Shown piece by piece: positions 12,701 to 62,754 of a DNA stretch of 64,000 nt. The notes beneath the pieces are model-generated. The model saw only the letters and a list, made by a program, of their open reading frames with translations, was not told where the DNA came from and did not search any database. Source of the stretch: Anthoceros angustus (Eukaryota > Plantae > Anthocerotophyta); contig MU008158.1 in assembly GCA_010909165.1 (NCBI GenBank), positions 3,311,478 through 3,375,477 on the forward strand. Reading direction: 5' to 3'. A program made the translations under genes and the position numbers. Positions within the stretch are counted from its first letter, which is position 1; each line of letters opens with the position of its first letter.

Positions 12701-12876
12701 ACCTAGGAAGGTGATTAGTGCATCAGTCCACTCTTCCTTCTTTGGTTTCATTCATGCAGTCACTCTGTGGACACATGTCGAGAGGTACGGATCTGAGCCA
12801 ACCTTTTCGACGGATCTAGACACATAATGATGGCACGAGTCTAGCGGCGTGGCTCGGGCGCCTTCTAGACCAACCT

Positions 12877-14222
12877 CTAGTTTGATGGGCACATGGTGGG
12901 TAACCCTCTTGGAGATTTGACTTCCACGAGATCGCTGCGGCTATGACATGGAGTCTTGACCTCGGTTGTGTTGATGGCATGTCCGCTCTTGGGAGGGTTT
13001 GGGTTTGTTCGTGGTCTTCCGGTTTCTCTCAACCGATTGATGAAGTCCTTGCGGAAAGGCGTTCTTTGAACCATGGTCTTGTGCCATGCAAGTGAAACAT
13101 TCCTCTTCTCACTTGTATTCCTTCTTCTCCTCCTCGTCGATTTTGAAAGTTGGTTTCTTGTCGTAGCGTTAATCTTGTTCCACTTAGGCTTGGAGGGACC
13201 TGCGGAAGAGAAGTGTTTGTACTTGTTCGTACCGTAATTGATGGCTGCTCGCATTGCTTCGACCAAAGTTGCTGGGTTCGTTTGGTTCACATCCGCTCTC
13301 ATTTCGAATTTCTGTCCGTCGATGAATTTCTCGATCTTTTGCTCCTCATCCAGCCTGGGCATGTCAAGTGTGAGTTGGAGAAACTTATAACAGTACTCTT
13401 GTACACTACCTTGTTGGAATATCTTTCGGAATTGTTGATACAAATCTCTGCGATGATTCACTGGTAGGAACTGTTCCAAGAAGAGCTGTTTGAGGACAGG
13501 CCAGGAGTACACGGGTGGTTCCATGCCAAGGTCCACATGTTTTTCTCTCTGGCGCCACCAACGGTAGGCATATCCTTCAAGCGACATCACGCAGAACTGG
13601 ATCTTCTGCAAATCGTCTTTGTGGGAGGCTGCAAGGTACTTGTCGAGTTTGTCCAACCAGTCATGCACACTTTGAGCATCTTTGGCACTTCCGTCGAACG
13701 TTGTGGTCTTGATTTTTTGGTGTAACTCCTTGTCGAGCTGGGGCTTCGGTTTGAACGGGTATTCTTCTCCCACTTGAGCTTCTCCACTCGGCGACCTCGT
13801 TGGCGCTCCCAATGCTCATATCTCATCATCTGCAGACGCCTCACCATTGCTTTGATGTCTTTGTTCTCTTCCTCGCTTGAGTTGGAGTTCTGATGAGTTT
13901 CTTCCTCGGCTCCCCATCCTCTGGGTGGGATTCCTTCTCGACACAAGTGCGGTGGTGTATCTCGTCCTTCTTCCCTTCCGTGTCGGGCGGGTTGCTCTGG
14001 TCTTCCATCCACGGTGTGGAGAGGTGTGTTCCGGTTGGCGCTCACAGGGGCCGGCAGTGCAGTCACCTCGGCGTCAGGGTGGGGTGGTGGCGCTGGGGTG
14101 TTGGTTGCTCCAGTGGAGCACACCCTCCAGTTGCCTCTCCAATCGGGCTTGGCCTCCCCACGGACTTCGATCCGATCGACAGCCCGCTCTACCTTAGCCA
14201 GCTGTTGGTCTTGTCGGGACAA
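12877..14222 (-). pseudogene. gag: Gypsy gag (retrotransposon gag domain), split by a frameshift
   Basis: ORF 12877-13812 has TFDGSAKDAQSVHDWLDKLDKY...LEGYAYRWW...LKQLFLEQF...QQGSVQEY...KFIDG. The overlapping upstream ORF 13587-14222 is probably its N-terminus. Confidence 0.88.
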
Positions 14223-15202: not shown

Positions 15203-15427
15203 CAAGTGCTAGCTTCCCGGCGGTGGAGGACCTCGCCAATTCATTCCACATAGAGACTTGTACAACTCTTAGCGCTCTCAACCTCACGACGCAACACTAG
15301 GCTCCAAGTAGCCGCTGTCCATTGACGATTCGCAGGCCACCTCCTCGAGGTGCTGCTCTTTATTGATAGAATACACTCTTGAGTTTGGCTATCTACGCTC
15401 AACTGGCTACTGCCCTTGACTCCACGA

Positions 15428-15700
15428 CAAGCTTACTAGTTAAGCTCTTCACATCTCTCTCCCTGGCTTGCAGCGCACACTTACCTGCTCTCTCAAATGA
15501 GTGTCCTCAAAGCCCTTGCTCTAGCCCTTATATATCCCACAACTTGACCTCAACTAGGCAAGCTTACTAGTTAAGCTCTTCACAGCTCTCTCCCAACACA
15601 AGGCTTGCAGCGCACACTTACCTGCTCTCTCAAATGAGTGTCCTCAAAGCCCTTGCTCTAGCCCTCATATATATCTAGCAGCCTGACCTCAACTAGGCAG
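15428..15700. repeat. ~131-bp tandem duplication in an LTR-like remnant flanking the gypsy insertion
   Basis: CAAGCTTACTAGTTAAGCTCTTCACA...CTCAACTAGGCA occurs at 15428 and 15559 and contains a TATATA-like motif. Confidence 0.75.
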
Positions 15701-16090
15701 CTGTTAACTTAACTGATCGCTAAGAGTCTTCTCTAGCTAGCTCTTCAGTAGTGGCTGTAGCAATTCCTCTCTAATAGGAGATTGCATGATGCATGCAACA
15801 TATGCATTTTCTTAACAGGGCAGCTACTAATTAGTTTTTTACTTCTTTTGATTTTTCACCTTTCTATCTTATTTCATAATACCGTTACTATTTATTACGA
15901 GGACATTTTTTTACTTCTCTTAATTTTTTACTTTTTTACTTTATTTTACCAATGCCGTTACTACTTATTGTATGAGAACGTCAACAAAAAAAACCAGCAC
16001 ACTCGAAGGAAAAAAACCTAGCTGGCAGAGCTCTTAAGAGTAGTAATGGTTTAAACCTTACTAACCTCCGACCTTGAAGCTGTTGGAGGC

Positions 16091-41206: not shown

Positions 41207-41762
41207 CTGTGAGCTTGTGAGACCGAGAGCTTGTGAGCCTGTGAGCTTGTGAGACCGAGAGGTTGTGAGCCTGTGAGCTTGTAAGAGCCTATGAGCCTAT
41301 GAGAGTGAGAGTCTGTGAGAGCCTAAGCATGTGAGCTTGTGAGACCGAGAGCTTGTGAGCCTGTGAGCTTGTGAGACCGAGAGCTTGTGAGCCTGTGAGC
41401 TTGTGAGACCGAGAGCTTGTGAGCCTGTGAGCTTGTGAGACCGAGAGCTTGTGAGCCTGTGAGAGGACAACTTGTGAGCTTGTGAGACCAGAGCTTGTGA
41501 GCTGTGAGAGGACAACAGAGCTTGTGAGAGACCGAGAGCTTGTGAGCCTGTGAGAGGACAACTTGTGAGCTTGTGAGACCAGAGCTTGTGAGCTGTGAGA
41601 GGACAACTTGTGAGCTTGTGAGACCGAGCTTGTGAGCCTGTGAGAGGACAACTTGTGAGCTTGTGAGACCGAGAGCTTGTGAGCCTGTGAGAGGACAACT
41701 TGTGAGCTTGTGAGACCGAGAGCTTGTGAGCCTGTGAGAGGACAACTTGTGAGCTTGTGAGA
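41207..41762. repeat. Minisatellite built from TGTGAG(C/A) modules (30-bp and ~38-bp units)
   Basis: GAGCTTGTGAGCCTGTGAGCTTGTGAGACC repeats grade into a variant containing GAGGACAAC. Confidence 0.93.
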
Positions 41763-42875: not shown

Positions 42876-45344
42876 AACACGATAATTTTTGAAGGGGGGG
42901 ATATACTGACCCCCTTCGGCCGAGACAGCACCCCCTTGTCACGAAGAACACCTTACCTAGAACAGCATATGTGCCCTACTTTGATAATGCACACACCCTT
43001 TACGAGGTCATATCTTTGATAAAAGATGCACTTTCAAGTCTACACCCGAGAACTGGAGCATGAGGGTGTGGGCCCGTTGCGTTTAGTAGAATGCATAGAG
43101 GGCTGCCATTTTCATATGTTTATTACAACCGAAAACTTTTACTTTCAAGTGGTGGAACACAATGAAAACAATCACATGTACTAGCGGAGTCTCATTTAAG
43201 TGGTCGTGAGAACATTGCAACAAACAAGCTGGAAGGAGGAAGTGGTCATCGGCATCGACAATAGCCATTCAAGAGTGCGGCTGGCGACTCATCCATGCCT
43301 TGGCGGCGGGTCAAGTACCACCGCCATATTCGAGGCGGTCCATATCCTCCGCCTCGAAGTTGTCGTTCTCCTCCATTGCTTGCTCGTCTTCAATAGTATC
43401 ATTCTTGGGCCCGTCCGGCGGTGTCGGCCACCTGACATCTAGTGACCCTCATCCAAAAGGTCGCGGTCGTGGTCTTCAACCTTCCGCACTCAATGCAACC
43501 ACTTGGGCTTTAAGGCAATGCCAACGTCCTTAAAATGAACAAAGTTAGTTGCCCATGCGCCCATGCAAGCATCCTTAAAATCAACAAAATTGAGTTGAGG
43601 AGGCACGAGGTTTGAACACGAAACCTATTCATTACTACACTTATTTCCCAAACACTAGACCAACAATCCATGGTTGAGTTCTTGAGGCGCTAAATATTTA
43701 TTTTCTAAGACAGCCTAGGGATGGAGGTAGGCGGTGTGCTAGGGGAGGCGCCGGCCGCCCATGGGCAAGGCATGGCGTGTTGGTGGGGGGCGCCGGCCGG
43801 CCGCCCATGGGCAAGGCATGGCGTGTTGGGGCGCGGCGGCCGGCGCCCATGGGTGGTGTTAGGGGAGGCGCCGGCCCATGGGCGGTGGTGTTAGGGGAGG
43901 CGCCGGCCGGCGCCCATGGGCGGTGTGCTAGGGGAGGCGGCCGGCGCCCATGGGTGGTGTTAGGGGAGGCGCCGGCCGCCCATGGGTAGGTGTGTTAGGG
44001 GCGCCGGCCGGCGCCATGGGCGGTGGTGTTAGGGGAGGCGCCGGCGCCCATGGGTAGGTGTGCTAGGGGAGGCGCCGACGCGCCTCCCTTAGCACCATCC
44101 TACGGTGCATACGGTGAAGCTAGGGGGACAAGAAGGGCAGCGGTATCCTATCACCGATGGAAGGTGTGGCCCATTTGCGGGAAGGGTTAAAAGATTTGCG
44201 TCCATAGGTGTTGTTGAAGAGTATAAGTGGTGGGAAGCCTTTGTTGGACGGAAGGAGATTGCTATCGTTGTGGAGAATAACATTGGGCTAGTGCTACAGC
44301 GTCCTTGGAAGTGGTTTTCACGTGCAGAAGTGGATCATACAGCCTGACCACTTCAAGTGCCGGATGAAGCTTTGCTAGATGAGGCATTATTGAGGGACCT
44401 CCCACAGCGTGATATGTATTTGGGGCATATCAAAATGCGGGAAGGCAACTGCGGGAAATGGCACGGATGAATGGGGACATAACGGAAATCCGAGAGGGGA
44501 TGTTTCTGGCAGTGCCGTGCAATACGGACATGCATAACAGGCCATTCTGGATTGGGGAGGTCATTGACGTGAAGCTAAACGCACCACGACCTCACTTTCT
44601 TATCCACTAGTATCGGACCGAGCACATAGATGCGTATGAAGGGAGATATGTGCAGGAACACATAGTCCGCCAGAGTGGTAACCCATCGGTCCAATCTTGG
44701 GGAAAAAGGGAATAAGATCCATTACCTAAAAACATACAGGAGGTATTTGTAGATGAAGCAGTCATCACTGTATTATGGGTTTGTGTTGAACGACGGAAAC
44801 ATCATGTCTGCGGTGGACAAAAAGCGATAAGGGATAAGCTCTGCGAGTTGCGTGGCTTCATACAACTGCGAGTGAAAGTGTCGAAGATAGTGATGACAAT
44901 GGAGGAGAAAATTTGGACCAAGTGATGACGATGGATTGAACTACGGGGATGAGTGGCGAAATCTCGTTTTCCGGGGTCCCGAGTTAATGTTGTAAGTCCG
45001 GTTCTTGATGTTTACATGTTAGGAAATACCGTCTGCGTGGCTTTTGTGGTGTCATAACAAAACCACATTTCCATCAAAGCGAGTTCTGATCGTCCTGCCC
45101 GTGAGCGGCCTTCCTCACCGTTCCTACTTTGCATCATTCCCTAGGTTCGAGTTTGCGACCACCATTCGACACAAACATTCTTTTGGATGGAAAGTAGTAA
45201 CTTTCTTGGTGACACCCTTTTTTCGAGTGCTTTTTCCGAATGCCTTCAAAACGCTGTTTTAGGGCCCATCAAAAACCCCCTTCAGAGATTATTTGCGGAA
45301 AACCCCCTTCGAGATTATTCACCCCCTTCAAAAATTATCGTGTT
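42876..45344 (+). mobile_element. Non-autonomous Sola-like DNA transposon (deletion derivative of the family at 47772-60042, opposite orientation)
   Basis: Perfect 23-bp TIR AACACGATAATTTTTGAAGGGGG (42876-42898; 45322-45344) and 4-bp TSD AGTA (42872-42875; 45345-45348). Internal sequence is homologous to the transposase 3' end (44150-44900, +) and the methyltransferase tail (~43250-43530, -). Confidence 0.9.
43727..44090. repeat. GC-rich minisatellite (GGGGAGGCGCCGGCCGCCCATGGGCGGTGTGCTA-like units)
   Basis: About ten degenerate 30-35 bp units; the last copy is inverted (CGCCTCCCTTAGCACCATCCTAC). Confidence 0.85.
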
Positions 45345-48300
45345 AGTACAATGAAGATCCTGATGCTTCTGTTGATGGGAGAGCATCCTACGCTTTTGCG
45401 TTGGAGCAAGTTTGGGGCGTGCGATCTCTCGAACCTGATATGAAACGGTGTTGAGATGAATTGTGACTCTTGACATTCTTCTTTTGGTCGAAGACTATAC
45501 GTCCAACTGTTTCGTGTCCCTTCATGAACAGGTGAACGAAACGTTTAGGTCTTATTTCAGATCTGGAAGATACCGTTTCAAATAAACTCAAGATAACGTT
45601 TCACTTACCTTGGAGTTGGAGCCCTTTCGACTAACTGCTTATATCTAGAAAGTTTGATGAAGAGGTCAGCACGGTCAGGCTAGGCAAAAATTTCTATCCT
45701 TCCTTCCCAGGCTGATCCCCCTCATCAAACCTTCCTGCATAATGAGCTGTTAGTTCTCCCTGTAGGACCATAACGATACCCTACGTGTATGTTTATAGTC
45801 ATAACTTTAACTGTCTCATAAGGGTTCGTATGTCCATAGAGCACTTTGATGCTTTGTCTCTACAATTTCAACAGCTTAGCATCAACAGTCAACCGACATA
45901 TTGCATAATGTCTGGAACTAATTTTGGACCAGTATTTACCTCTTCCTTTCTTAGGTTTAGCCTGCTAGCTTTGTGGCGGCTGCTGTTTTTGGGAGCTATT
46001 GCCCCCTTTTTCATTGTATCATTTTCCCTCTTTGGTGCAGACTGTTGTCTTACATTTTTTTGCCTTGTTTGTGTGTTGTCTTCAGGATGGGGGATGGTGT
46101 TCTTACTTCTTCTAGGGTTTTGAGTGGGGCTCATAGGCGTCTTGTTGTTCGATAGCCCTAGGCTATTCGTCGTTGTGTCTTTTCCCTTGTTCTTACTCCC
46201 TTTGCTTCTAAGTTTGTTTCGCATTCTTGTTTCCATAAGTTGTCCTCCTTTGAATGTCGTAGGCTGTTGGGTCTTGATCATGCTTCCACTCTTGTAGTGG
46301 ATGCTTCTTCTTCTCAGGAGTTGAGTTTCGTTTAGGGCTACTAGTGACAAAAGGGATGCTACTACTGTTCTTGTTGAAGCTTTCTATGCTTTTAGCTGGG
46401 ATTTTCCCCGGGATGGTTTGGCTATTCAGGTTATTGAGGCGGCTCGTTTGATGGATAGTTTTGATTTTGATAAGTAACGTTTCCTATCAATTTTTTCTTT
46501 CAAGCTTTCCGGTTTTGAGAAGATCGGCTCTTACTCGGTGACTCTTCAAATTTCTTCTCCTTCTCCTGGGGAGGTGTTCAAGAACTCTACTTCTTCCTTT
46601 CATCTCAATGGTGACTTTGCTGTTGGGACTCTTCTTTATCTTGGGTGGGATCTTGTCATTTCATTTTTTGTGGATGTACTTCCTGAGTTGTCCAAGCAGT
46701 TGCCTTTGGATTTGGAGGTTGTGTTCCCTAGTGTGGCTGCTTTTGTGTATTACATTCATTAGTGGCAAGAGGCAAAGGATTCCTTCGCTTTGCTTGCTGA
46801 AGCTTGGGTTCTGGCTTTTGGTGAGCTGGCTACTATGGTTGGTGCTGTTCTTTTCAAACTTGAGTGGACTCACTTGCGTCAGGCCTGTATGGACAAATTT
46901 TGTTTGGAGCATCTCATGAGGCTGTTGCTTGTTTCTCGGAGCTGTACGGCTGGTTTTCAAAGAGTTGTTGTAGCCTAGAGCCCCTAGTGGGCTTACCTGC
47001 TATGGACGTTTAAATTTTTTTTCCACTGATTATGATGATTAGTGGGATTGGTGTGAGTGTTTTTCTGAGTTCAAGCCCTTTGTTCATTTTGCAAAGGTGT
47101 TGCAGCATATTTTGAGCATTGTGAAGATGGCTCCTTAGATGGGGGATGTGAACCTTGTTTGGATTGATGGTTTGCAGTCTCTTCTTCTTCATTTGGTGCC
47201 AATTTTCACATATTGGGGTGTGGAAGGATGTTTCGGAGGACGATCTGATAACTTTTGTTTTCTTCACCGTCAAGCGTTTTTGGTTGGCGTTGGATGAGAA
47301 TTTCGAATCGGCTATACTTGAGCCGCTCAAATTGTCGAAGTTCCTCAACTCCCGTGTTCTGTGATTGCCCTTTTGCCTCTTGAGTTTTGAGGAAATCTTA
47401 AGGCCTTGTGGCGCCTGCTTTTGAGGCCTTTGTTGTCTCCCGCTTTTGTCCGATTTTTATTCACTAATATATCTCCCTCTTTTTCACTAAAAATGAATTT
47501 GGGAGTTTTGTTTTTGACTATCCCATTGCCATACATTGGATAGGTAATCGAGCAAACATTCATGAGCACACCATCAATGGGTCAAGCAACATTTATACCG
47601 AAGAAGACACTTGATTCTATGTTCTTTTCTAAGAAAATTATACATATGTAATTTGGAAGTATAATTCAAAAGGCTGTATCCTCTGATGAACATTGAGAAA
47701 GGTGTGCATAATAACCTCAAAATAGAAACCATCGAGTCGCATTCACACAAGAAGCTCTCGGAAGAAACCATAACATGATATCTTTCGAAGGGGGTGAATA
47801 TTCACGAAGAGGGTTTTGTGACATATATCCTCTGAAGGGGGTTTCACATGGGCATTGAACTCCCACTTTTTGGGGTATGGGTCAATTATGCGTAAAAGAA
47901 GGGTGACAATTCGCATGAACCAGTTGATAGAAGATCCATTCAACGCCGAAGGGTTATGGTGTTAGAGTTAACCTCAATTGGTCCGCATTTAAGACCCATG
48001 ACAAAGGCCATTGCAGTAATTCCGGTCTCTTTTCCGTGGAGGAAAATGAAATCTACAAAAGAAGGGTGATGAAACTTTGAGGACGAGGCTACGGCGGTAT
48101 GAAAGCGAGTTTGAGAGGAAGGGGCCGGCGGCGTCCCTACCATGCCGATGATCCCTTGCGAATGGCGTGGAGTTGCGAGCCTTAACTCGGTTTGGTTTGA
48201 AAAGACTTGAGATTGGGGTGGGGATGGCTTCCGATCTCAATTGTGGTCGCAAATATATTGACTGCTCAGTCCGCTGATCGATGAACTTAAAAAGTCGGCG

Positions 48301-48699
48301 AAACTAGTTCCGCCGTCATGGCCTGAGAGGAACATGCCCGGCTCAACGTATGATGCCTTACATTATGCCGCAATGCCGATGTCGGCCCTGGCCAAATTCC
48401 CCACGTGTCCTTCTCTATGGTAAGCACAAACTCTTGAAAATGGAAGATAATATCTATGACAGTCTACAACTTCTACAGGATAGCCACAACCAAAAGCCAT
48501 GGGCGTACATACTATTGAAAATGTGCACGCACATACATTGTGCGCAAACTACGAGAATAGAGCATGACGCGCAACCTCATCAATTGCCGTGAAAATGACG
48601 GATCATTGAGTGTTTCCTACTCTTGCGACTCCACGCCTTCATCTTATGGGCCCGGCATCGACCATCCTCTTGTTGTCCTCGGTTGCACTTTGACTCAGT

Positions 48700-51600
48700 T
48701 GAATAAACCCTCGCAATTCAATTAACTTATCTTTTATGGCCTTCTTATCCACAGTACAAATGTTTCCGACAAACCATAATAGAGGATGACTGTTTGGTGA
48801 ACAAAAACTTGTTGGATATTCTTGACGGATAGCCTTCGCCCCGTCTCCCGAGTTGCTTCTGCCATCCCTCGATTATATATTCTTCCATTACCTCCTTCAT
48901 ACGCATCTGTGTTGATTCTGTACCAATGAACAAGGAAGTGAGGCTCGTGCATGTAGTTCAACACAAGTCACCTTGCCAATCCAAAAGGGCCTATTTTGCG
49001 TGTCGGTGCCGCGAGCGCAACTAACATTCCCCTTTATTTGCGATATCACCATTCAACCGTGACATTTCTTGTTGTTGCCTCCCAGTTTTGGTATGCTCCC
49101 AAATACATATCTCGTTGTGGGAGCTCCTCAAGAATGCCTCCTCCAGTGCTTCATCCGGAACATGCAGAGGTTGGGCTGTGCCTTGCACTTCAGATCTGGC
49201 GTACCACCTCCAAGGTTTGTGTAGCACAAGGCCAATGTTGTTTTCCACAATAACAGCAATCTCCTCCTGGTCCACCCAGAAAGCTTCCCACCATAAAAAC
49301 TCCCTGGATGTCACATACGGCCTAAGTTCTGCAAGACCAGCCTTTAGATGAGCAACGGCTGCAGTTGGAGATAATATCATGTGGCTTCCTTTTTATCCCT
49401 CGACCGCGGCGCAGTAGCAAATTATAGTGTCCAAGGCACAATTTCAAAACTCCAAACCCCTTGATTTCCCAGGCGAGGTCGAGGCTTGCTCGATCTGTCC
49501 AACCGCGTCGCTTTTCTTCACGTGTTATTTTGAGCAGTCTTTGGAGCGATAGGTTGTTCGGTTCTTAACCGCCGCCATAATCGAGTCCTCTCGGCCTTGT
49601 GTAATGGGCCACACATATGACCAAGTCGGCCACTTGATCAATACCTTGACCTCTAGGCGTGTACGCTTGCAGATCTCGACAATGCGGGAAGCGTGTGAGC
49701 TTCTTTATGTTTCAAGCTTTTGGAGAAGCAAGAAAACATCCGTCGATTTGATCATGAGTATGTCCGACCAAAAGGAATCCCACTTTCACTTTTCAAAAGT
49801 ACCCATATCAACAAGCATGTTCGGATAAGCAAAAGCGGTGGTTCTTATTCTCCTGCATGTGTTGTCCAACCGCAAATACAAAACTCTTGGCAGACACCGT
49901 AGTTATGTATAACGTCACGAATAATGGTGATCGTAAGATTCGCGTCGTTCATGATTCGCATAATGCAAATAGGCTCTAGCTTTAAGCGTATAGTTGTGAA
50001 TCATGCACCCAACCACGTGGTGAAATCGACACTCCTCTACGAGGTTTTTCGCCACCGGAGAAGATGAGGTATCTGTCTTTTTGGTCCATTCCATCAATTG
50101 ATAGCAAGATATACTTATGTGGCTCCACATAGCTCTTGCTCTGTGTTTAGCCATTTTGCCGTTCTGGTGGAGCCGCACGATGTGCTTCCAAGGCAACTGG
50201 TATTTCTCTGCCAAAACGAACATCATAATCAGCAACAAAAAGACCCCCATCATCGACCATCCACTTTGCAGAGAACCATCCAACCTATACAAAAGCGTTT
50301 TTCAAGACGCCTCTAAACATTCATGCAAGAGTGGGGAAGGGCGCGTCGGCGGTCGGCGCCCTTCCCCTTGTGCCGGATGATTTGGGAGGGTCTCGAATCA
50401 TCATAAGCAGTGCAGGCGCGGCGGCCGCGCCTCCAACTGAGAGGGCTGGTTGCCTCAGGCGCCGGCCGGCGCCACGGCGGCGCCGCCCTCCAGCCAATAA
50501 GCATTGGGCATTGCAAGCATGAATCGATCATGACGAAGAAGAAGGGTACATCCGTGCGGATGATAGGCGGGCATTCAACAACCGGAGGAACAAGCACATG
50601 AAAGACACATCGGTGCAATTTACCTTGATCTTGCTTGTGCTTTGTATTTATAGTGCTCTTGAGCTGCGCAAGCGAGCATGTTGAAAATCTGTTGGACTTG
50701 ATTTTACTCGGGAAGTTGCTTCTCCAGTTTAAGAACCATGGATACTTCACATAGCGTATGCGAGCTTTTGGCGCCTTACAACGCCCATATTTCCAACTTT
50801 GTATACGTGTCGGAAGATTAAATACTTCCAAATTAGGAAGCCGCTCGGCCATAAACATAAAAGCATTGTCCATCCAAGAAATGGCATCAAGCGCATAAGT
50901 AGATTGTGCCTTCGGGTTTGGTCCGAATCCATCCCAAGGTGATTCCAGAAAGACTCTGCTCTTTAGCTCCTCATACCTCTTGTGCCCAAGGCAATACACT
51001 CTTTTGAAAGCCTTCAAGCAGCAGCGCATAAGAGTCGCTCCCATGAGATGTGTGACCGCTTTCCTTCTATCCTGCACTCCATCCGGTGAACAAGACGAAG
51101 AAATGTCTCCTGTTCCTGCCTCCCCATCCGAAGAAAGCGGTATCGCTACTCCTGAAATCGCTCTTTGGTCAGCTTTAGCAAACACATTTTGTTGCAACAA
51201 GGCTTCTTGAAATCTGCAAGCATTGTCTCCCTTCACTTTTGTCAACGACACTCAATTTCCGTCTCCGGCATGATAGAGTATTTGCGGTTGTCGGGGCCTT
51301 CAAAGTGTCACTCAGAGGCTTCGGATGGAAGGATTGAGAGGCATCAGGTGTCTGGAAGTGGCGAGAATCGTCGTCGTCCCCACTGGGCCTGTCATCATCC
51401 GGTGAGTGGAGGCGAGCAACAATATCCTCATGAAACAAACCACGGCGTGGAACCATCGGTCTGTCTCCGAGGGGAAGGTCACAGACAATGGGAAGGGAAA
51501 GAGAACGGCGTTTGGATGGGCTTCCCTCCAAAGCAGCATAGCGATGCAAATTCCTAGGTGTTCGAGGAACACCTCGCGGGACATTTGGCGACGACAAATG

Positions 51601-51950
51601 TCGACGTTTTCGTCTGCTGCAAGAGCAATGTCCGAATATTCAACGGGGATCACACCATGTGGATTTTCACACCGCCCATCGTCAATTATAATCTGAAGGG
51701 AAGAAATTTAACCTTCATCATCTCTACGTTCTTCTGCAATGGCAAACTGCACACGACGGGTGGCGACAGATGTCGGCGATGTGGCGGCCTTCTGCCCTCC
51801 CTTCTCTTGTTTTCGTGAAGCACGGGACATTGGGAAGGCAAGTGTTGATCCCAAAGATGATCCGATGGCACCTGATCAACGAACTTAGAATCATAAAACA
51901 AACCCGTCAAGGAAAGCGTAACGGTGCAGGCCGAAGAACTCAAACCTCTT
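48700..51950 (-). pseudogene. Sola-like DDD transposase (DUF7869-type), frameshifted as assembled
   Basis: Manual frame-joining gives CLKAFKRVY...WMDNAFMFMAERLP, NRFSTCSL, SIDGMDQK (~50080-50100), HVVGCMIH, NDANLTI, LYLRLDNTC-ENKN (~49840-49870), FLLVGHTHDQID (~49742-49775) and C-terminal PFWIGKV...FLVHWY. The 5' limit is uncertain. Confidence 0.8.
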
Positions 51951-52257
51951 GTCCTTAGGGTGTGTGAGGCGCAACATTGTATGCCCTCTGGTTCACAAGA
52001 ACCTTGAGAGCGCGCCGAAGGCGAGGCGAGGAGATTTGTGAAGGAAGTTGCATGCGAATGGCGGTGTGTGCCTTCAAGGCATATCGCAAAGATAGGAAGG
52101 ACATTATTTCTCTCTCGTTACGACATCATGATGGTCTATCGTGAGAGGTATCCAACGTGCATCGCGCCGTCATGCCTTTTATTAGACAATTATGGTGCCC
52201 GCCAGCCGTCAAGTCAATGTGATTATGGATAGACAAGAGTTTATATTAGGCATAAGG

Positions 52258-52530
52258 GTGGACGTGAAATGTTAACGTTTTGGTCTATAAATGCAGGGGC
52301 AAGGGAACCCTAATTACAAACCTCTCTCTCTTGTCGATTCGCGTGGCGGTGTGGGCGTATTTCCAGTCCGAGAGGCGGCACGAGGCATAGCGAAATATGG
52401 TGGAACGTGAAATGTTAAGTACGTTTTGGTCTATAAATGCAGGCAAGGGAACCCTAATTACAAACCTCTCTCTCTTGTCGTTTCGAGGCTGTGGGTGTGT
52501 ATTTCAGTCGAAGTAACGAGGCGAGCGGCA
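52258..52530 (+). promoter_or_regulatory. Tandemly duplicated TATA-box promoter module upstream of the methyltransferase gene
   Basis: GTGGA(A)CGTGAAATGTTAA...GGTCTATAAATGCAGG...AAACCTCTCTCTCTTGTCG occurs at ~52258 and ~52399. Each copy has TATAAAT followed by a CT-rich tract. Confidence 0.6.
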
Positions 52531-53226
52531 TACGCGTGTGTTGCTTGGCGAGTTGGAGAACAATTGCGGTTGAATTGCAGCTTTGTCCCTTTCACGCCGG
52601 CGGGAATTCGCGATCGCCGAGAAACTTTGAGAGGCGGTCGGAAGCAATCATCGAGTTTTGCGAGGCAGTTGCCCCTCCATGTGATCGAGCATCACCTTCC
52701 TTCCATTCATCTTTGACAGTTGGCGATTTGTCGCCGCCTTGTCTTGTGATTTTGCTTGCGCAATTGAGATGGCGGCGGGAGGCGGAGCAAGAAGGACTTG
52801 GCGGTGGCCGACCCCAGGCGCCCCGGGAGGCGGGAACAAGGCGAAGCGGCCAACCCCGGGGCAGGTGGCGCCCAGACGTGGAGGCGGGAGGTGTGGGAGG
52901 GCATAAACCATCGGCTGTGGAGGCAAAATCTGGGAGCATGTCTTCAGGGAAGACAAGCCGGACAAAGGCTGCTAGCGTGCAAGGGCTGGGGAAGGAGGCT
53001 CCGAAAACCTCAAAGCATGTGGTGCCACCTCCAATTCCATCGCCTTTCAGCTACGAGGAAACCGTGCACATCCGCAGACTGGGAGGCCAGATTGACCCTG
53101 TTATGATTTTGCAGAAGGATTGGATGCTCGTCCAGGATCCGCATCCGAGGAAGAGGAAAAGCAGATGGACGCCTTTTGAAACTACGGATAATGGGGTATG
53201 TGGGGGCTTTGCCCAATCGAGCAAGT

Positions 53227-55430
53227 GGATGGGTAATCTGGGCAACAATGGATATGAATGAGGGGAGCCGAGTTCACGTTTTGCACCACCAGCCATATGA
53301 GTTTGATGCAGATGATCCGGGACCACGATATATCTGGTCTTATGTTCTCGACCTCGGAGGGTTCAATGCCAAGAAATGTGCACCTCGCTCACTTGTCGAA
53401 GAGTTCCAGTGCATGCGACAACACCTGTAAGTTGGAACAACAACTGTCTTTTGAGAACCATGAGGCTAGGATGGTAGCGTGATTTTCGCTTTCTCTTTCC
53501 ACGATTAGTCGGAATGGCCCTCATCAGGCTATTTGCGGAAGATTACGGAGGCAGTGTGGATCACGGAGAGAGCTTTCAATGAGAAGGGTGAGAGCAGCCC
53601 ATCAAAGAATTGCGAGAGGCGGAGAGAGAGTCGGAGCCCCGGATCCCGAAAGTGAACTTGGGCCCTCGGATGAGGAAGATGGCCCCATTCCACGTCCTCG
53701 GGCATTCGGAGGAAGAAGTGTCCGGGGGCATGAGGAAGACGGAGATCGGGATCTTGCCGCATTGCATGGTCAATGGTTGTCCCACCATGGCCTACATCGG
53801 AGCGAGGCGGCCGGCCGGCCGGCGCCTGTGTGTTGAAGGGTGGGCGGGCCGAACTTGCCACCGGATCCTAAGCGGTTTATCCGGTTTCAACAAGGAGATG
53901 GGGTTGGGCGCCGGCCGGCTAAAACTTCGGTACGCCCTTCCACCGGACCGCAGTGGAAGAATAGACACATGGGATCCCGAGAGGGAAGAGGGGTGGGTGT
54001 GGAGGCGGGCAGCAGAAGAAGGAGGAGGAGGGCGCCGCCGGCCGCGCCTCACCGGAGAGTCAAGACCAGGGTGGTCGATGGGAAAGCGCCCGCTCACATT
54101 TGGATTCTATGGGGACTACAAAGGCACATAGTGGCGACGGAGGCGAGGAAGGAAGAAAAAAGCAGAAAGCGGTGGAGGATCGTTGAGTCATTCATTTTAT
54201 ATTTCGACAGATGAAGAACGGTTAGAAGACGCGATCCGGGATGCACCCCTCTCTCGCTGAGGGATTCAGCTTCGAAGAAGGTGGTCTTGGAACAAGTGTT
54301 GGTCAAGTTGGAGAACTTAAGACCGGCGCACATAACAGCCGGATGGGTAACTGGGCAACAATGGATATGAATGAGGGGAGCCGGAGTTCACGCTTTTGCA
54401 CCAGTGCCATATGAGTTTGACGGTTGATCCAGTGACCTCGATATATACAGGTCTTATGTTCTCACCTGAGGGTTCAATGCCAAGAAATGTGCACCTCGCT
54501 CACTTGTCAAGAGTTCCGCGAGTGCATGCGACAACACACCGTAAGTTGGAACAAGCAACTGCCTTTTGAGAACCATGAGGCTAGGATGATCGACGTGATT
54601 TTCGCTCGCTTTCCACCCAAGTCGGAATGGCCTCATGTGGCTATTTATGGGAAGATTACGAGACAGTGGGATCACAGGAGAGAGCAATGAGAAGGGTGAG
54701 AGCAGCCCATCAAAGAATAAGAGGCAGAGAGTCCGAGCCCTGCATCCCGAAAGTGAACTTGGGCCCTCGATGAGGAAGATGGCCCCATTCCACGCCCTCG
54801 GGCATTCGGAGGAAGAAGTGTCCGGGGGCATGAGGAAGACGGAGATGCCGGATGCCGCCAAGCTGGCATTGCAGGTCAATGGTTGTCCCAACCATGGCCT
54901 ATCCGAAGGGAGCAGGGGGCCGGCCGGCGTGTGTGAAGGGAGGAACTTGCCCACCGGATCCTAACCGGTTTATCCGCCCAACAAGGAGATGGGGTTGCGC
55001 CGGCGCCGGAAGAGCTTCCATGATTCCACCGGACCGCAGTGGAAGAATAGACATGGGAACCCCGAGAGGGAAGAGGGGTGGGTGGAGGCAGCAGAAGAAG
55101 GAGGAGGAGGGCGCCGCCGGCCGCGCCTCACCGGAGAGTCAAGACCAGGGTGGTCGATGGGAAAGCGCCCGCTCACATTTGGATTCTATGCAGGGACTAC
55201 AAAGGCACTGGCGCAGACGGAGGCGAAAGGAAGAAAACCGAAGAAAATGGCAGGCGGGAAGATCCGTTGAGTCATTCGATCATCATATTTCGGCTGATGA
55301 AGAACGGTTAGAAGACGCGATCCGGGATGCACCCCTCTCTCTCGCTGAGGGATTCAAACCAAAGAAGGTGGTCTTGGAACAAGTGTTGGTCAAGTTGGAG
55401 AACTTAAGACCACGCACATAACGCCGGATG
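53227..55430. repeat. ~1.1 kb tandem duplication inside the cargo gene
   Basis: The junction motif GGATG occurs at 53227, 54341 and 55426; the blocks are homologous. Confidence 0.9.
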
Positions 55431-58400
55431 CGCATTCGAGGGTTGATGAGGCATGGGCCAATTATTTGGCTCGGGTTATTTCAAGGGAGGATAGAGGAGG
55501 GTGTTTTGCCACTCTTATGTATGATAGATCCAAGTGAGTGCGACCTCGTGGGCGGGTGAAGCGATGGCGGGCGAAAAAATACGTTATGGGGTTCTTGGTG
55601 GGAACCATACATATGCGAATGAAACATCTATGTGATATCTCACGGGGAAGAAGAGGTTTCAATATGTGGAAGCACATGTCTATTGTGGGCTTACTGTACC
55701 AGAAATGCGAGTGCTGGCCACGGATCACAATACCATGTCGGACAAAGAAAGAAGATGAACTTCATTGAGCAGGTCCGGTACTTACGAGATGAGCTGATTG
55801 CGAAACGCGAAGGAGTACAGATGACCATGGCATGGAAGTACAATCGTACAAAGTGCTAGGATTGATTGAGGATGATGAAGGCGCGAAGACGATGTCTACA
55901 AGCAGAACAAAGTAGACAATCGCACACACATTTTATGCATCGCCAAGGTGAGGAAGGTGTGGGACAATGTGGACTTGATTTTTTCAAAGTGGGAGGCTGG
56001 AGAGCTTATGGAACAAGAAGCATTTACCAGCAGGGACTAGCAAGAAAGGGAAAGGGAAGCGGAAGATGGCTGACGAGCAGAAGCAAGTGGACACAGTATA
56101 CGTAAAGCCAAAGGACATGTTGGCAAAGCCATGGAAATCCTTCCAAGGAATACCAGCTGGAGAGTGCGGGCAGCAAATTCTGGTCACAGCTACAGAAAAA
56201 GTTTTAACTGGACTTATTGATTTGAAGGGCATGGACGAGGAGATCACTTTGGAAGAAGTTCCATGTCATACAAGTTGCTATGGTAAACACACAGGGTGCT
56301 CTTCGTTCGAGAGGTGCGAGAAGAATATCCGCTGCATTCGGCTGCACTGGATGTTGTCCCGCTTTCAAACCGCTTTGGAAAGGTTAGTTTCGCCCATGTG
56401 TTCGGTGGAGGAGGCGCCGGCCGCGCCTCCTCTCTTCTTTGCGTTTGGACTAACCATCATGTGTTTGGCAAAGAATCGAAGGATATTGAGGTCCTTTCCA
56501 AACTTCCGGATGTCTTCCAACATTTCATTTTCAAGTAAATAATTGGAAAGGACGAGGACGGCGTGCTCTGCGGACAAGGACCTTGAGGAAGGATTGGAGG
56601 TCTTCAATGTTCCATCCTCGGACAAACAAGTACAATACCAAGTGGAAAGCAGGGATGTTTTGGACATGCGAGGATTTCTGAGAGGCCGGAAGTACACACT
56701 TCTGGTGATGGACGTTCCAAGGGGGTTTCAAATTGGGCCCTTGGACAAACGAGTTGACATGCAGATGATGGACACTATTTTGCAGAGTTTTGCGGAGAAA
56801 ACTACTTCGGATGAGTTGAGAATGATTGTCATGCATGGTGTGGAGGAGGCTCACACCGTGAGGGAGTCAATGCGAAAGTGGAGCAAGAAAGGGGGCTTGG
56901 TCTCATTTGTATGGGACAAGACCAACATGAACAATGACAAGGGTGGATTCGAAACCGTGGAATATGTCACGGTAGGGTGGGGCATGGGAGATGGATTCAC
57001 AGGGGATAGAGTTCCAATGATGCCTAATGCCATGCACGGCACTTTCAACAATGGGAGGTCCGTGATCGCACACGATACGGTTGTGAAGAAAGCAGTGTAC
57101 ATGTCCCAAGACAAGCTGGTTGTTTGCCCATACCGAGGCCTCGGGCTTATGATGAAACTTATCGAACCTTCTCGCGAGAGGGAAGAGGGGTGGGAGGAGG
57201 AGGAGGAGGAGGAGGAGGAGGGCGCCGGCCGGCCGCGCCCCTCACCGCGGGAGATGACCACCAAGGTCTGGTCATGGAAAGCGCCCGCTCAATTTGGATT
57301 CTATGGGGACTACAAAGGCACATAGTGGCGCACGGAGGCGAAAGGAAGAAAACCGAAGAAAACGCAAGTGGAAGCGAGATGTTTTGGACATGCGAGGATT
57401 TCGAGATGAAGAACGGTTAGAAGACGCGATCCGGATGCACTCTCTCGCTGAGGGATTCACCACGAAGAAGGTTGTCTTGGAAACAAGTGTTGGTCAAGTT
57501 GGAGAACTTAAGACCACCGCACATAACGCCGGATGCGCAGATTCGAGGGTTGATGAGGCATGGGCCAATTATTGGCTCGGGTTATTTCGAAGGGAGGATA
57601 GAGGAGGGTGTTTTGCCACTCTTATGTATGATAGATCCAAGTGAGTGCGACCTCGAAGTCGGATCGGAAGCGATGGCGGCGAAAAAATACGTTATGGGGT
57701 TCTTGGGAACCATACATATGCGACCATGAAACATCTATGTGATATCTCACCGTGGAAGAAGAGGTTTCAATATGTGGAAGCACATGTCTATTGTGGGCTT
57801 CTTGTAAATGCGAGTGCCGCCACGGATCACAATACCATGTCGGACAAAGAAAGAAGATGAACTTCATTGAGCGGTCCGTACTTACGAGATGAGCTGCAGA
57901 TTGCGAACGCGAAGGAGTACAGATGACCATGGCATGGAAGTACAACTGCAAAGTGCTTGGATTGATTGAGGATGATGAAGACGATGTCTACAAGCGTAAC
58001 AAAGTAGACAATCGCACACACATTTTATGCATCGCCAAGGTGAGGAAGGTGTGGGACAATGTGGACTTGATTTTTCAAAGTGGGAGGTGGAGAGCTTATG
58101 GAGCAAGAAGCATTTACCGGTGAGGACTAGCAAGAAAGGGAAAGGGAAGCGGAAGATGGTGACGAGCGTACAAGTGGACAGATAATGTGAAGCCAAAGGA
58201 CATGTTGGCAAAGCCATGGAAATCCTTCCAAGGAATACCACCGGAGAGTGCGGGCAGCAAATTCGTCACAATGTAAAAGTTTTAACTGGACTTATTGATT
58301 TGAAGGGCATGGATGAGGAGATCACTTTATGGAAGAAGTTCCATGTCATACAAGTTGCTATGGTAAACACCGGGTGCTCTTCGTCAGAGGTGCGAGAAGA

Positions 58401-59242
58401 ATATCCGCTGCATTCGGCTGCACTGGATGTTGTCCCGCTTTCAAACCGCTTTGCTGGAAAGGTTAGTTTCGCCCATGTGTTCGAAAAGTGGAGGCGCCGG
58501 CCGCGCCTCCTCTTCTTTGCGTTTGGACTAACCATCATGTGTTTGGCAAAGAATCGAAGGATATTGAGGTCCTTTCCAAACTTCCATGTCTTCCAACATT
58601 TCATTTTCAAGTAAATAATTGAAAGGATCGGAGGACGAGCAGGTTTCTGCGACAAGGACCTTGAGGAAGGATTGAGGTCTTCAATGTTCCATCCCTGACA
58701 AACAAGTACAATACCAAGTGGAAAGGTGGATGTTTTGGACATGCGAGGATTTCGAGAGGCCTAAGTACACACTGGTGATGGACGCTCCAAGGGGTTTCAA
58801 ATTGGGCCCTTGGACAAACGAGTTGACATGCACATGATGATGGACACCTTTGCGAGTTTTGCGGAGAAAACTACTGGATGAGTTGAGAATGATTGTCATG
58901 CATGGTGTGGAGGAGGCTCACCGTGAGGGAGTCAATGCGAAAGTGGAGCAAGAAAGGGGCTTGGTCTCATTTGTATGGGACAAGACCAACATGAACAATG
59001 ACGGTGGATTCAAACCGTGGAATATGTCACGGTAGGGTGGGGCATGGGAGATGGATTCACAGGATAGAGTTCCAATGATGCCTAATGCCATGCACGGCAC
59101 TTTCAACAATGGGAGGTCCGTGATCGCACACGATACGGCCAGAAGAAACAGTGTACATGTCCCAAGACAAGCTGGTTGTTTGCCCATACCAGAGGCCTCT
59201 GGGGCTTATGATGAAACTTATCAGAACCTTCTCGCGAGAGGG
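55063..59242. repeat. ~2.1 kb tandem duplication inside the cargo gene (ParB region + MTase N-terminal half)
   Basis: The junction motif CGAGAGGG occurs at 55063, 57175 and 59235; the blocks are homologous. Confidence 0.9.
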
Positions 59243-60042
59243 GGATTGGATTTTGGACGTATGCTCCGGGAGTGGGACAACGTTATTGGCTTCCCTACTG
59301 TGCGGCCGGAATTGTATTGCTGTTGAAGCTGACTTGAGGTGTGCAGGATACATACCACAGCGGATTGCTGGGCATGAGGTTCACGATCTTGAAGAAGAGG
59401 CGGCGTTTGGCGCCCACCGCAGGTCTTACTTGATTTTAGGCGAAGGAGGTGTGTATCGTGAGAAGGACTCGCAAGCGCAGTTGTTTCCTTAAACGCAAGG
59501 CGGTGAAGACCAAAGCGGTGATCTTTTGGCGGATGGGCAGCAAACTTTGGACAACTGTGGCAGCCTTCCCACCCTTGACGGCGGTGCACGAGAACAAGAA
59601 GACACAAGGCGTTGGGGAGAACGATAGCTTCGATGAAGAGGAAGTGGGCGCTTGCAATCGCTATTGTGATGGATTCGGAGTTTTCTCTGCCCCCTGTCGA
59701 GTCCCAAGTTAGCCCTAAGGAATAGGCTTAGTGTTCTCATGTCATGTGCGTCTGCTGCTTCGTTTAGTTCATACTGTGTTATGGGACCGTTTCATTGCGG
59801 CAAGTGTTGTCTTCGGTTTTGCCAGTTCCAAATAAACAATGAAAGGGCGCCGGCCGGCGCCTCTATCCGCTTTCATGTCTTTGTTGCGAATCGTTTTTGA
59901 ATACCTACGTGTTCTACCATGGTCGACCTTTCTTCAAAAAGAGCTAAAAGGCATATTTCGGGACTGTGTGTCATGTGCAAAGAGGGTTTTCATTTCACGG
60001 AAGGGGGTTCGGATATTCACCCCCTTCACAAGATATCGTGTT

Positions 60043-60312
60043 CCATGATAGTATGAATTCGCAGACAAGTCATAACAAGAAACTACATTATGATGTGCAT
60101 GAGTTACAACGCAAGTCACGATAAGAAAGCTAATGATATGCACATGTTTAGGCGCACGGTTGTAAAGTGACACACCATGATAGTATGAATTCGCAGACAA
60201 GTGATAAAAAGAAACTACATGATGATGTGCATGAGTTTAGGCACATGAAGCAAGTCATGATAAGAAAGCTAATGATATGCACATGTTTAAGCACACGGTT
60301 GTAGAGTGACAC
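60043..60312. repeat. Two tandem ~132-bp repeats immediately outside the right TIR
   Basis: CCATGATAGTATGAATTCGCAGACAAG...GTGACAC occurs at 60043 and ~60175. Confidence 0.85.
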
Positions 60313-61946: not shown

Positions 61947-62470
61947 TCAACTCGCCCAAGCTACAGGTTGATGGGAAGAGGTGCGACAACAAGATTGCCA
62001 GATTACCGTTGTATCCTGAACATGATTACCATGTGACATCTCATTCTCCGTAACAAGATTTAGGTCAGGTAATGTTCTTCCTTCTTCTTGTGCGCGAACA
62101 TAAGATCCATTGGTACACCAAGCAAGGCGCAATAACTGGGAAGTATGTTCAAATATACCACATACCTGTTGCACCTTCACAACATGTTTGCAAATGAATC
62201 CTTTCTGCCCCATCCCACAAGTACAAAATGCCCATGGAGAATGTGCAGCCTCAATGACGTAAACTTTGTCACTATCCTCAAAGGACATGCAATATGCAAC
62301 AGTAGACCCAACTACAGACGGGAATATGACAGCCTCGTCTGGGATTGTGCTCGCTGCAGACAAAACATGCTCATATACCTTCTCGAGTTTTAAATTCGGC
62401 TTATAACCCCCAGTCTTGGTGAAATCAAGTATGGAAGACCACATATACACTAGCCCCTCTCTGAAGTGTC
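61947..62470 (-). pseudogene. Mutator/MULE transposase C-terminal fragment with SWIM zinc finger
   Basis: VYVIEAAHSPWAFCTCGMGQKGFICKHVVKV fits the CxC-x(n)-CxH SWIM pattern. The upstream catalytic domain is absent. Confidence 0.65.
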
Positions 62471-62754
62471 GGGATGAACGATTTTTTTTTTTTTGAGAGT
62501 GTTTGTATAGCAAAGTGCTTTGAGAATCGCCTGGGTAAGGTCTTTTATACGAGAATGGTCCTTGGCCCTTGGGATAATAATTTGTTTTTTTTGAACCTTA
62601 GGTTTTCAATTTTTGATAGGTAGGTCGGAGATAGAGTCCTTGGGTTTTGGTGATTTTAGAAATAAGAAAGTGTCTATATATGTTAGGTGCCTACACCGCC
62701 ACAGGGCGCAGCTGGAGGTAGCCGCCCACCACGGTCAAGAACGGGACATGCACT

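Follow-up and report, generated by a model that had tools for sequence, protein, structure and literature searches.

We analyzed a 64,000-nucleotide stretch of the Anthoceros angustus genome (contig MU008158.1 of assembly GCA_010909165.1, positions 3,311,478 to 3,375,477 of the forward strand; hereafter, the window), in which a first-pass annotation had described a cut-and-paste transposon carrying its own ParB-fused DNA methyltransferase at 47772-60042. This segment is very probably an old, inactive copy, decayed and rearranged, of a Sola1 transposon family that encodes two proteins, a transposase and a ParB-methyltransferase accessory protein. We hold with high confidence both its identity as a decayed Sola1 element and the status of the ParB-methyltransferase gene as cargo of the family as a whole. 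In this copy, the transposase gene is frameshifted, and a tandem duplication of 2.1 kb broke up the accessory gene, which then decayed. The coordinates of all features are collected in Table 1.

The limits of the element are set by its ends. Between positions 47000 and 61000, the arms 47772-47801 and 60013-60042 (30 nt, 90% identical) form the only inverted pair of at least 25 nt; extended by eye to 32 nt, they agree at 28 of 32 positions. Both this pair and the flanking CCAT, on which the proposal of a 12.3-kb unit had been built, were thus recovered. A sister element lies nearby in the inverse orientation and carries AACACGATA...GAAGGGGGTGAATA as the terminus of each end. Its content is limited to the ends, remnants of the transposase C-terminus, and a palindrome satellite, and it has no methyltransferase. 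Both elements carry the terminus AACAYGATA...GAAGGGGGTGAATA at each end, and the 14-mer GAAGGGGGTGAATA is confined to these four sites. Similarly, the 9-mer GAAGGGGGT has eight exact copies in the window, where 0.6 are expected by chance, each located no more than about 75 bp from one of the four ends. Since two independent 4-bp duplications accompany four matching termini, both the boundaries and the length of the duplication are fixed. Overall, the ends, the 4-bp duplications, and the transposase relics agree on a cut-and-paste element of the Sola type (Sola1/DUF7869), as originally suggested. Outside the element, the first base of the right target-site duplication is also the first base of a two-copy 139-bp tandem repeat (60043-60312, 89% identical). 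Nothing in the left flank matches this repeat, so there is no paralogous empty site, and the insertion did not interrupt an array that was already there; the repeat may stem from duplication of the flank in connection with insertion or repair, or be coincidental.

The transposase gene is on the minus strand. Its motifs IDGMDQ (50098), LDNTC (49869), ENKN (49852), and GHTHD (49765) are spread over different reading frames, in which the longest stop-free pieces are short, and the gene is therefore a frameshifted relic. For comparison, an intact gene of 869 amino acids (aa) is found on L003, an ENA metagenome contig that, together with a second one, L004, was reached via a relative of the accessory protein. 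The L003 gene matches Pfam DUF7869 (E 1.7e-51) and lies on the strand opposite a ParB-like gene. Searching its protein against the window with tblastn yielded collinear minus-strand matches from 51223 down to 48779, with an E-value of 1.8e-15 over the catalytic core, and a further match in the sister element at 44216-44682. The window's IDGMDQ, LDNTC/ENKN, and VGHTHDQID correspond to DGMDQ, DNTARENKN, and GHTHDHIDQ of L003, and the catalytic triad of aspartates (DDD) is present in the relic, though in separate frames. The DDD transposase proposed earlier therefore stands as regards its motifs and where they lie; the gene itself is frameshifted, and the third catalytic aspartate, which had been assigned to GHTHD, is more likely the one in QID, because the Ectocarpus transposase reads THIQID.

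That transposase belongs to Sola1-1_Ec32, and four blocks follow the same order in it and in the window: DG.DQ, LDNT..ENKN, VGHTH.QID, and F..W...FP.K.K....F..C. The block order of the curated Sola1-1_Ec32 transposase is FNRIWAQEFPHLKLKPTGDFMLCKIC, MMDGANQ, VDNTVAENKN, and VGHTHIQIDQIF (supplement of PMC12477816), and the element is reported to have 4-bp duplications, AACCG...CGGTT termini, and Physcomitrella Sola1-1_PPa as its best Repbase match (PMC12477816). We filed the window's element under Sola1 because of the collinear DUF7869 matches and these shared motif blocks. Pfam returned no match on any stop-free piece of either the transposase or the ParB-like domain, as the pieces are too short or broken, and a word-indexed protein search with the transposase N-terminal open reading frame (ORF) was also without a match.

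On the plus strand, the accessory gene is affected by a tandem duplication. Its units, 55063-57182 and 57175-59242, are 90.5% identical by blastn (92% over aligned columns); 161 substitutions (8%) separate them, along with 55 small indels, which fall mostly outside homopolymers and in some cases span 4-8 bp. The motifs of the gene are GGNH at 55597, DVPRG at 56711, DAPRG at 58781, YQRPLGL at 59187, CSGSGTT at 59262, and RNCIAVE at 59307; every motif quoted in the first-pass annotation was recovered at the coordinates it listed, on the minus strand for the transposase and on the plus strand for the accessory gene. Given the duplication, GGNH and DVPRG belong to copy 1, and motif I is present only at the end of copy 2. 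A divergent plus-strand ParB-methyltransferase gene is thus present as described, yet it is not one gene here. With both genes broken, the copy is not functional, and the idea of a working element does not survive: its transposase is frameshifted, and its accessory gene is split and riddled with indels.

Additional evidence came from the contigs of one DNA sequencing run (X1), which contain 10% of the words of the stretch. These contigs are pieces of other copies of the family, and they stack at high word depth on the transposase core and on the methyltransferase core. At several sites where copy 2 has deletions, they carry extra letters. The GC-rich region upstream of the ParB-like domain (53227-55430) yielded no homolog and has zero depth in the X1 contigs. 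Between the two divergent genes, a 144-bp unit with a TATAAA-like box, GGTCTATAAATGCAGG, is present in two copies and may represent a duplicated promoter.

The arrangement of the two genes recurs outside this genome. A 16-kb Logan contig, L001, carries a minus-strand gene matching window positions 51232-50811, divergent to a plus-strand ParB-like/methyltransferase gene, and its proteins are 25-45% identical to the window. Similarly, L003 and L004 have a DUF7869 transposase divergent to a ParB-like ORF, which is followed by a PF01555 ORF, and Ginkgo biloba has at least five paralogs of the accessory gene. Since the same divergent layout is found in two unrelated outside sources, in addition to the Ginkgo paralogs, the accessory gene is cargo of the family and not a nested insertion; the published Sola1-1_Ec32 shares this layout, in line with the original view of a transposon family with its own methyltransferase. 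The absence of the gene from the sister element neither supports nor refutes its cargo status, because the sister, a deletion derivative, is also missing most of the transposase. No inverted ends were found in L003 and L004, both of which are partial contigs. Further downstream, L001 also encodes a ULP-like peptidase (Peptidase_C48) and part of a RecQ-type helicase (11918-12892 and 15394-15961).

We next consider the methyltransferase domain. Running the PF01555 (N6_N4_Mtase) profile on the accessory gene, in which such a domain had been proposed, gave a match above the cut-off at 59124-59489 (E 2e-11, 44.6 bits versus a gathering cut-off of 26.7). The match covers profile positions 163-212 only, which leaves just the C-terminal third of the domain recognized by Pfam in this copy; the relative P0012 aligns to positions 3-218. 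We scanned 1.8 billion representatives exhaustively with HMMER, using the N-terminal half of the domain as the query, and obtained 12 proteins, 10 of them true relatives, from Ginkgo biloba (Gb_37443, 670 aa), one Logan run, and metagenomes, all of the transposon-type family; a word-indexed protein search with the same half gave no match. Motif IV lies upstream of motif I (DVCSGSGTT) in the window and in all relatives, confirming the beta-class order noted earlier. The alignment of the relatives shows a conserved motif IV of the form D-[ILVA]-P-[YHR]-G, followed by RxxVxHS, WxKxN, YQKP, and GDWVLDxxSGSGT, and in the HMMER alignment VDIPHG of the Ginkgo protein falls on DPPY of M.RsrI.

The structure of the domain could be assessed in Ginkgo, where the AlphaFold2 (AF2) model is confident at residues 350-590 and unusable in the N-terminal half (pLDDT <50). 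Foldseek matched this model to CcrM, M.BceJIV, M.RsrI, M.MboIIA, and M1.HpyAVI, with E-values of 1e-12 to 1e-14, and ranked the CcrM/M.RsrI group ahead of M.PvuII and the rotifer N4CMT. Sequence scores followed the same direction, with E-values of about 2e-6 for N6-adenine (N6A) enzymes versus 0.35-0.9 for N4-cytosine (N4C) enzymes. Taken together, the Foldseek matches and sequence scores indicate the fold of a beta-class amino-methyltransferase, nearer to the adenine enzymes. The target base is not readable from fold or sequence similarity, and N6-adenine would be the more likely one if the domain is active. PF01555-type domains have changed repeatedly between N6-methyladenine (6mA) and N4-methylcytosine (4mC) activity (PMC8885841).

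The N-terminal part of the accessory protein is represented in the window by broken domain pieces only. The ones near GGNH can be aligned to a domain conserved among the proteins from Ginkgo, metagenome, and Logan sources, which has the pattern Y.V.GG.H...A...L......F..VE..VY.GLT..E..LL..DHN. A domain-only AF2 model of residues 285-500 of the relative P0023, to which window positions 55573-56022 align, reached pLDDT values of 70-89 over its first ~130 residues. When this model was searched with Foldseek, all of the top 50 PDB matches and top 30 Swiss-Prot matches were Noc, ParB, PadC, KorB, sulfiredoxin (Srx), or other proteins of ParB-like fold (E 7e-5 to 1e-3, probability 1.0; TM 0.56-0.62 by target for Srx). 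As the top structure matches belong exclusively to this fold, a ParB/sulfiredoxin fold is supported for the domain by the modeled homolog. Sequence-based searches provided less: a language-model search of a protein atlas pointed to phage ParB_N and DUF6551 clusters, as leads only; a profile of the ParB-like core matched only ZAP among PDB sequences, by chance; and a tblastn search of phages with the Ginkgo protein matched the methyltransferase domain only, with no prokaryotic sequence match to the ParB-like part.

Beyond the coding regions, the two elements share a 16-bp palindrome, GGCGCCGGCCGGCGCC. Allowing up to three mismatches, it has 12 sites in the window, compared with 0.21 expected, and all of them are inside the two elements. 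Five form a tandem array with a period of ~34 bp in the sister element (43789-44015), within a GC-rich satellite (43750-44081; periods of 34, 67, and 101 bp) made of GGCGCCGGCCGGCGCC and a second palindrome, GCCCATGGGC. In the main element, exact copies lie at 50458 and 59846, and degenerate ones are found at 50345, 53811, 53907, 54916, and 57221. A 16-bp palindrome has the size of a bacterial parS site, and, judging from sequence, GGCGCCGGCCGGCGCC is the best candidate docking site for the ParB-like domain. In intact members of the family, the ParB-like domain would dock on an element-specific sequence of this kind; the methyltransferase-fold domain would then act on the element's own DNA, with N6-adenine as the likelier target if it is active; and silencing or transposition would be influenced as a result. 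Self-targeting through the palindromes is a tentative proposal, and we regard it as less than probable.

Several observations weigh against the reading developed so far. The Sola1 assignment compares motif blocks taken from a published supplement, as opposed to aligning the transposase computationally with a Sola1 entry in Repbase, and no intact copy of the family was seen in this genome. Part of the frameshifts could be assembly indel noise. Pfam ParB_N (PF02195) has no match in the family proteins, in which only DUF6551 appears, below the cut-off (E 0.019-0.032) and in the Ginkgo paralogs; the ParB-like domain claimed at the outset is thus upheld in its fold and not in its Pfam signature. 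Its CTP-binding box GERRxRA is not conserved either, and reads GGNHTYA or GGSHSAEA. Palindrome arrays were not found in the outside loci, which are partial contigs. Finally, motif IV lacks the first proline and the aromatic residue of the canonical (D/N/S)PP(Y/F/W).

This last point leads to an alternative view of the accessory protein. In characterized amino-methyltransferases, the flipped base is stacked against the aromatic residue of DPPY, and loss of this residue makes canonical activity doubtful here. The motif varies by lineage: it reads DIPYG in the metagenome and other branches and DIPHG in Ginkgo, and DVPRG and DAPRG in the window are joined by DLPRG in the Logan organism (in all, four diverged intact relatives). 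Retention of the arginine among relatives that are only ~30% identical points to a constrained change, as opposed to decay. Catalysis may therefore be altered or lost in the D-V/A-P-R-G lineage, where the protein could be a pseudo-enzyme that keeps the fold as a DNA- or S-adenosylmethionine (SAM)-binding module, as in METTL14 and the inactive DIRS1 domains, and serves, in transposition or regulation, as a ParB-like DNA-binding or bridging factor that leaves no methyl mark. Motif I (GSGSG/GSGTT) and YQKP nevertheless stay well conserved, as if SAM were still bound and used. On balance, we consider the pseudo-enzyme a serious possibility that falls short of being the expected outcome, and genuine DNA methylation by the arginine variant doubtful.

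A second alternative is that the duplications and the many frameshifts are artefacts of a noisy long-read assembly, and that the true locus is a single, possibly intact, gene pair. The X1 contig that spans the unique left flank and the adjoining end (47650-47818) has no substitutions and eight one-base gaps relative to the window, so sequencing noise, in either the assembly or X1, may account for some of the indels; this bears on every frameshift call in this genome. The ratio of indels to substitutions between the duplicate units is also high (55 events versus 161). However, X1, with its small share of the stretch's words, may itself be the noisy data set, the duplicate units differ by 8% in substitutions and the inverted ends at 4 of 32 positions, and most indels are found outside homopolymers, some of them several bases long. 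Whatever the indel noise, the substitution load shows that the main element copy is old, and we judge an artefact of this extent improbable. A third alternative, in which the accessory gene is foreign, either mobile in its own right or derived from the host, and was inserted in or captured by a single copy, could appeal to the 2.47-kb sister element without the gene and to the missing family-level depth of 53227-55430 in the X1 contigs; it is very unlikely and largely refuted by the conserved layout, which recurs in L001 and L003/L004, whose proteins are 25-45% identical, and in the Ectocarpus Sola1 element, as well as by the lack of an inner inverted repeat or duplication around the gene, by the loss of most of the transposase from the sister, and by the high X1 word depth of both the transposase core and the methyltransferase core.

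Table 1. Features of the Sola1 element and its sister in the window (window coordinates)
Feature	Position	Strand	Evidence or remark
Left target-site duplication CCAT	47768..47771	n/a	identical 4 bp abuts both element ends
Left terminal inverted repeat AACATGATATCTTTCGAAGGGGGTGAATATTC	47772..47803	+	28/32 match to right end; terminus common to sister element
Right terminal inverted repeat	60011..60042	-	pairs with left end
Right target-site duplication CCAT	60043..60046	n/a	directly outside right end
Sister element, 2.47-kb deletion derivative	42876..45344	-	same termini, own 4-bp duplication TACT (minus-strand reading)
Subterminal 9-mer motif GAAGGGGGT	47787..47842; also 60000-60027 and sister ends	+ (47787..47842)	exact-match count
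Sola1/DUF7869 transposase pseudogene in many frame pieces, broken by a GC-rich palindrome stretch	48700..51251	-	tblastn with L003 protein, motifs, frames
Palindrome array remnant, one exact GGCGCCGGCCGGCGCC at 50458	50345..50473	n/a	
144-bp unit with a TATAAA-like box, present twice between the divergent genes	52252..52509	+	
Two tandem 1.1-kb GC-rich units, 53227-54345 and 54341-55430 (86% identical), upstream of the ParB-like domain	53227..55430	+	hold degenerate palindromes
ParB-methyltransferase gene copy 1: ParB-like core, linker, methyltransferase N-half with DVPRG; stops before motif I	55573..57169	+	
2.1-kb tandem duplication, unit 2 (counterpart of 55063-57182)	57175..59242	+	junction in microhomology TCGAGAGGGA
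ParB-methyltransferase gene copy 2: heavily frameshifted, ends with the sole motif I (DVCSGSGTT...RNCIAVE)	57663..59489	+	
Exact GGCGCCGGCCGGCGCC palindrome	59846..59861	n/a	~180 bp inside right end

The closest known system is Sola1-1_Ec32 of the brown alga Ectocarpus, a 21.5-kb element with 282-bp imperfect inverted ends (Genome Biol 2025, PMC12477816). Its accessory protein, encoded on the strand opposite the transposase, has 1104 aa with ParB-like and N4C/N6A-type methyltransferase domains, and binding and modification of its own element have already been proposed for it (PMC12477816). The novelty that the first-pass annotation saw in a Sola element with a methyltransferase is therefore lost, as both the architecture and the idea of self-modification were published in 2025 for the alga. 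Common to the two elements are the Sola1 transposase blocks, the 4-bp duplications, the AAC termini, and the opposite-strand ParB-methyltransferase; in contrast, the element described here has 30-32-bp ends, a plant host, and a DxPRG motif IV, and is a dead copy. The accessory proteins, which were compared by description only, measure ~600-760 aa in the relatives found here versus 1104 aa in Ectocarpus. Our literature search found no paper on a Sola1 plus ParB-methyltransferase architecture in land plants.

Related parts are found in other transposons. In red-alga Plavaka elements, PAG2 is a PF01555 DNA methylase and PAG3 is ParB-like, and inverted-repeat tandem arrays adjoin the PAG3-type gene, where they are read as self-binding sites (Bostrychia preprint, 10.1101/2025.02.11.637652). 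The resemblance to the family described here lies in the transposon-borne methylase and ParB-like parts and in the arrays of palindromes or inverted repeats. However, PAG2 and PAG3 are separate proteins (methylase plus SET, and ParB plus 2OG oxygenase, respectively), and their carriers are EnSpm/Plavaka, Zisupton, Mutator, and Fanzor elements, not Sola1. A more distant, conceptual analogy is offered by VANDAL transposons, whose VANC is an anti-silencing protein that induces hypomethylation, according to the passage of the same preprint that cites it: in both cases, a sequence-specific protein encoded by the transposon would change the epigenetic state of its own copies, although VANC is unrelated to the ParB-methyltransferase protein.

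Outside transposons, the phage and plasmid beta-class N6-adenine methyltransferases and ParB-methylase loci (Iyer et al., PMC4738411) share the fold and the motif order, and the best solved matches, CcrM, M.RsrI, M.MboIIA, and M.BceJIV, are beta-class N6A enzymes. A tblastn search with the Ginkgo protein matched the methyltransferase domain in 554 phage records at 24-28% identity; the two that were opened are stand-alone methylases with canonical motifs, unlike the ParB-fused family. Among eukaryotic proteins, the Marchantia enzymes MpDN4MT1a/b and the bdelloid rotifer enzyme N4CMT are likewise of the PF01555-type beta class and of bacterial ancestry. They are, however, encoded by host genes, carry a (T)SPPY motif, and are proven 4mC writers, and the family described here lacks SPPY; N4CMT has a chromodomain, and MpDN4MT1 (TSPPY) has no extra domains, whereas this family has a ParB-like domain. 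The suggestion that such elements were the vehicle for these domestications thus finds no backing, given the D-[ILVA]-P-[YHR]-G motif as opposed to (T)SPPY and the exhaustive HMMER relatives, all of which are transposon-type; MpDN4MT1 was compared by description only.

Other features of the window include a minus-strand ORF of 216 aa (61950-62597) that shows the SWIM-type zinc-finger pattern characteristic of Mutator-like/FAR1 transposases (CTCGMGQKGFICKHV) and is probably another transposon relic just beyond the right end. At 41207-41762, a long tandem array with a 16/32/47-bp unit (TGTGAGCTTGTGAGA...) translates as SQAHKLS-type repeats. Rfam had no match in the window.

Few transposons encode DNA-modifying or DNA-binding accessory proteins of their own, and such proteins could mark the element itself or protect it against host silencing. 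Our findings add to the algal cases evidence for a Sola1 plus ParB-methyltransferase module in plants (this genome and the Ginkgo paralogs), along with two outside sources. The plant host, the non-canonical motif IV, and the 16-bp palindrome found only in the elements appear to be new. As the copy is dead, its value lies in its membership of the family and not in a functional locus. A speculative and rather improbable reading is that the streptophyte accessory protein, with a Tyr-to-Arg change (His in Ginkgo) under constraint, its ParB-like domain, and GGCGCCGGCCGGCGCC together form a parS/ParB-like self-recognition system encoded by a eukaryotic transposon. If true, such a system might carry out a novel reaction or act without catalysis, for instance by bridging the ends, clustering copies, or shielding them from silencing. 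The conserved change in the catalytic motif makes the question of methylation directly testable, and the 16-bp palindrome offers a concrete candidate binding site.

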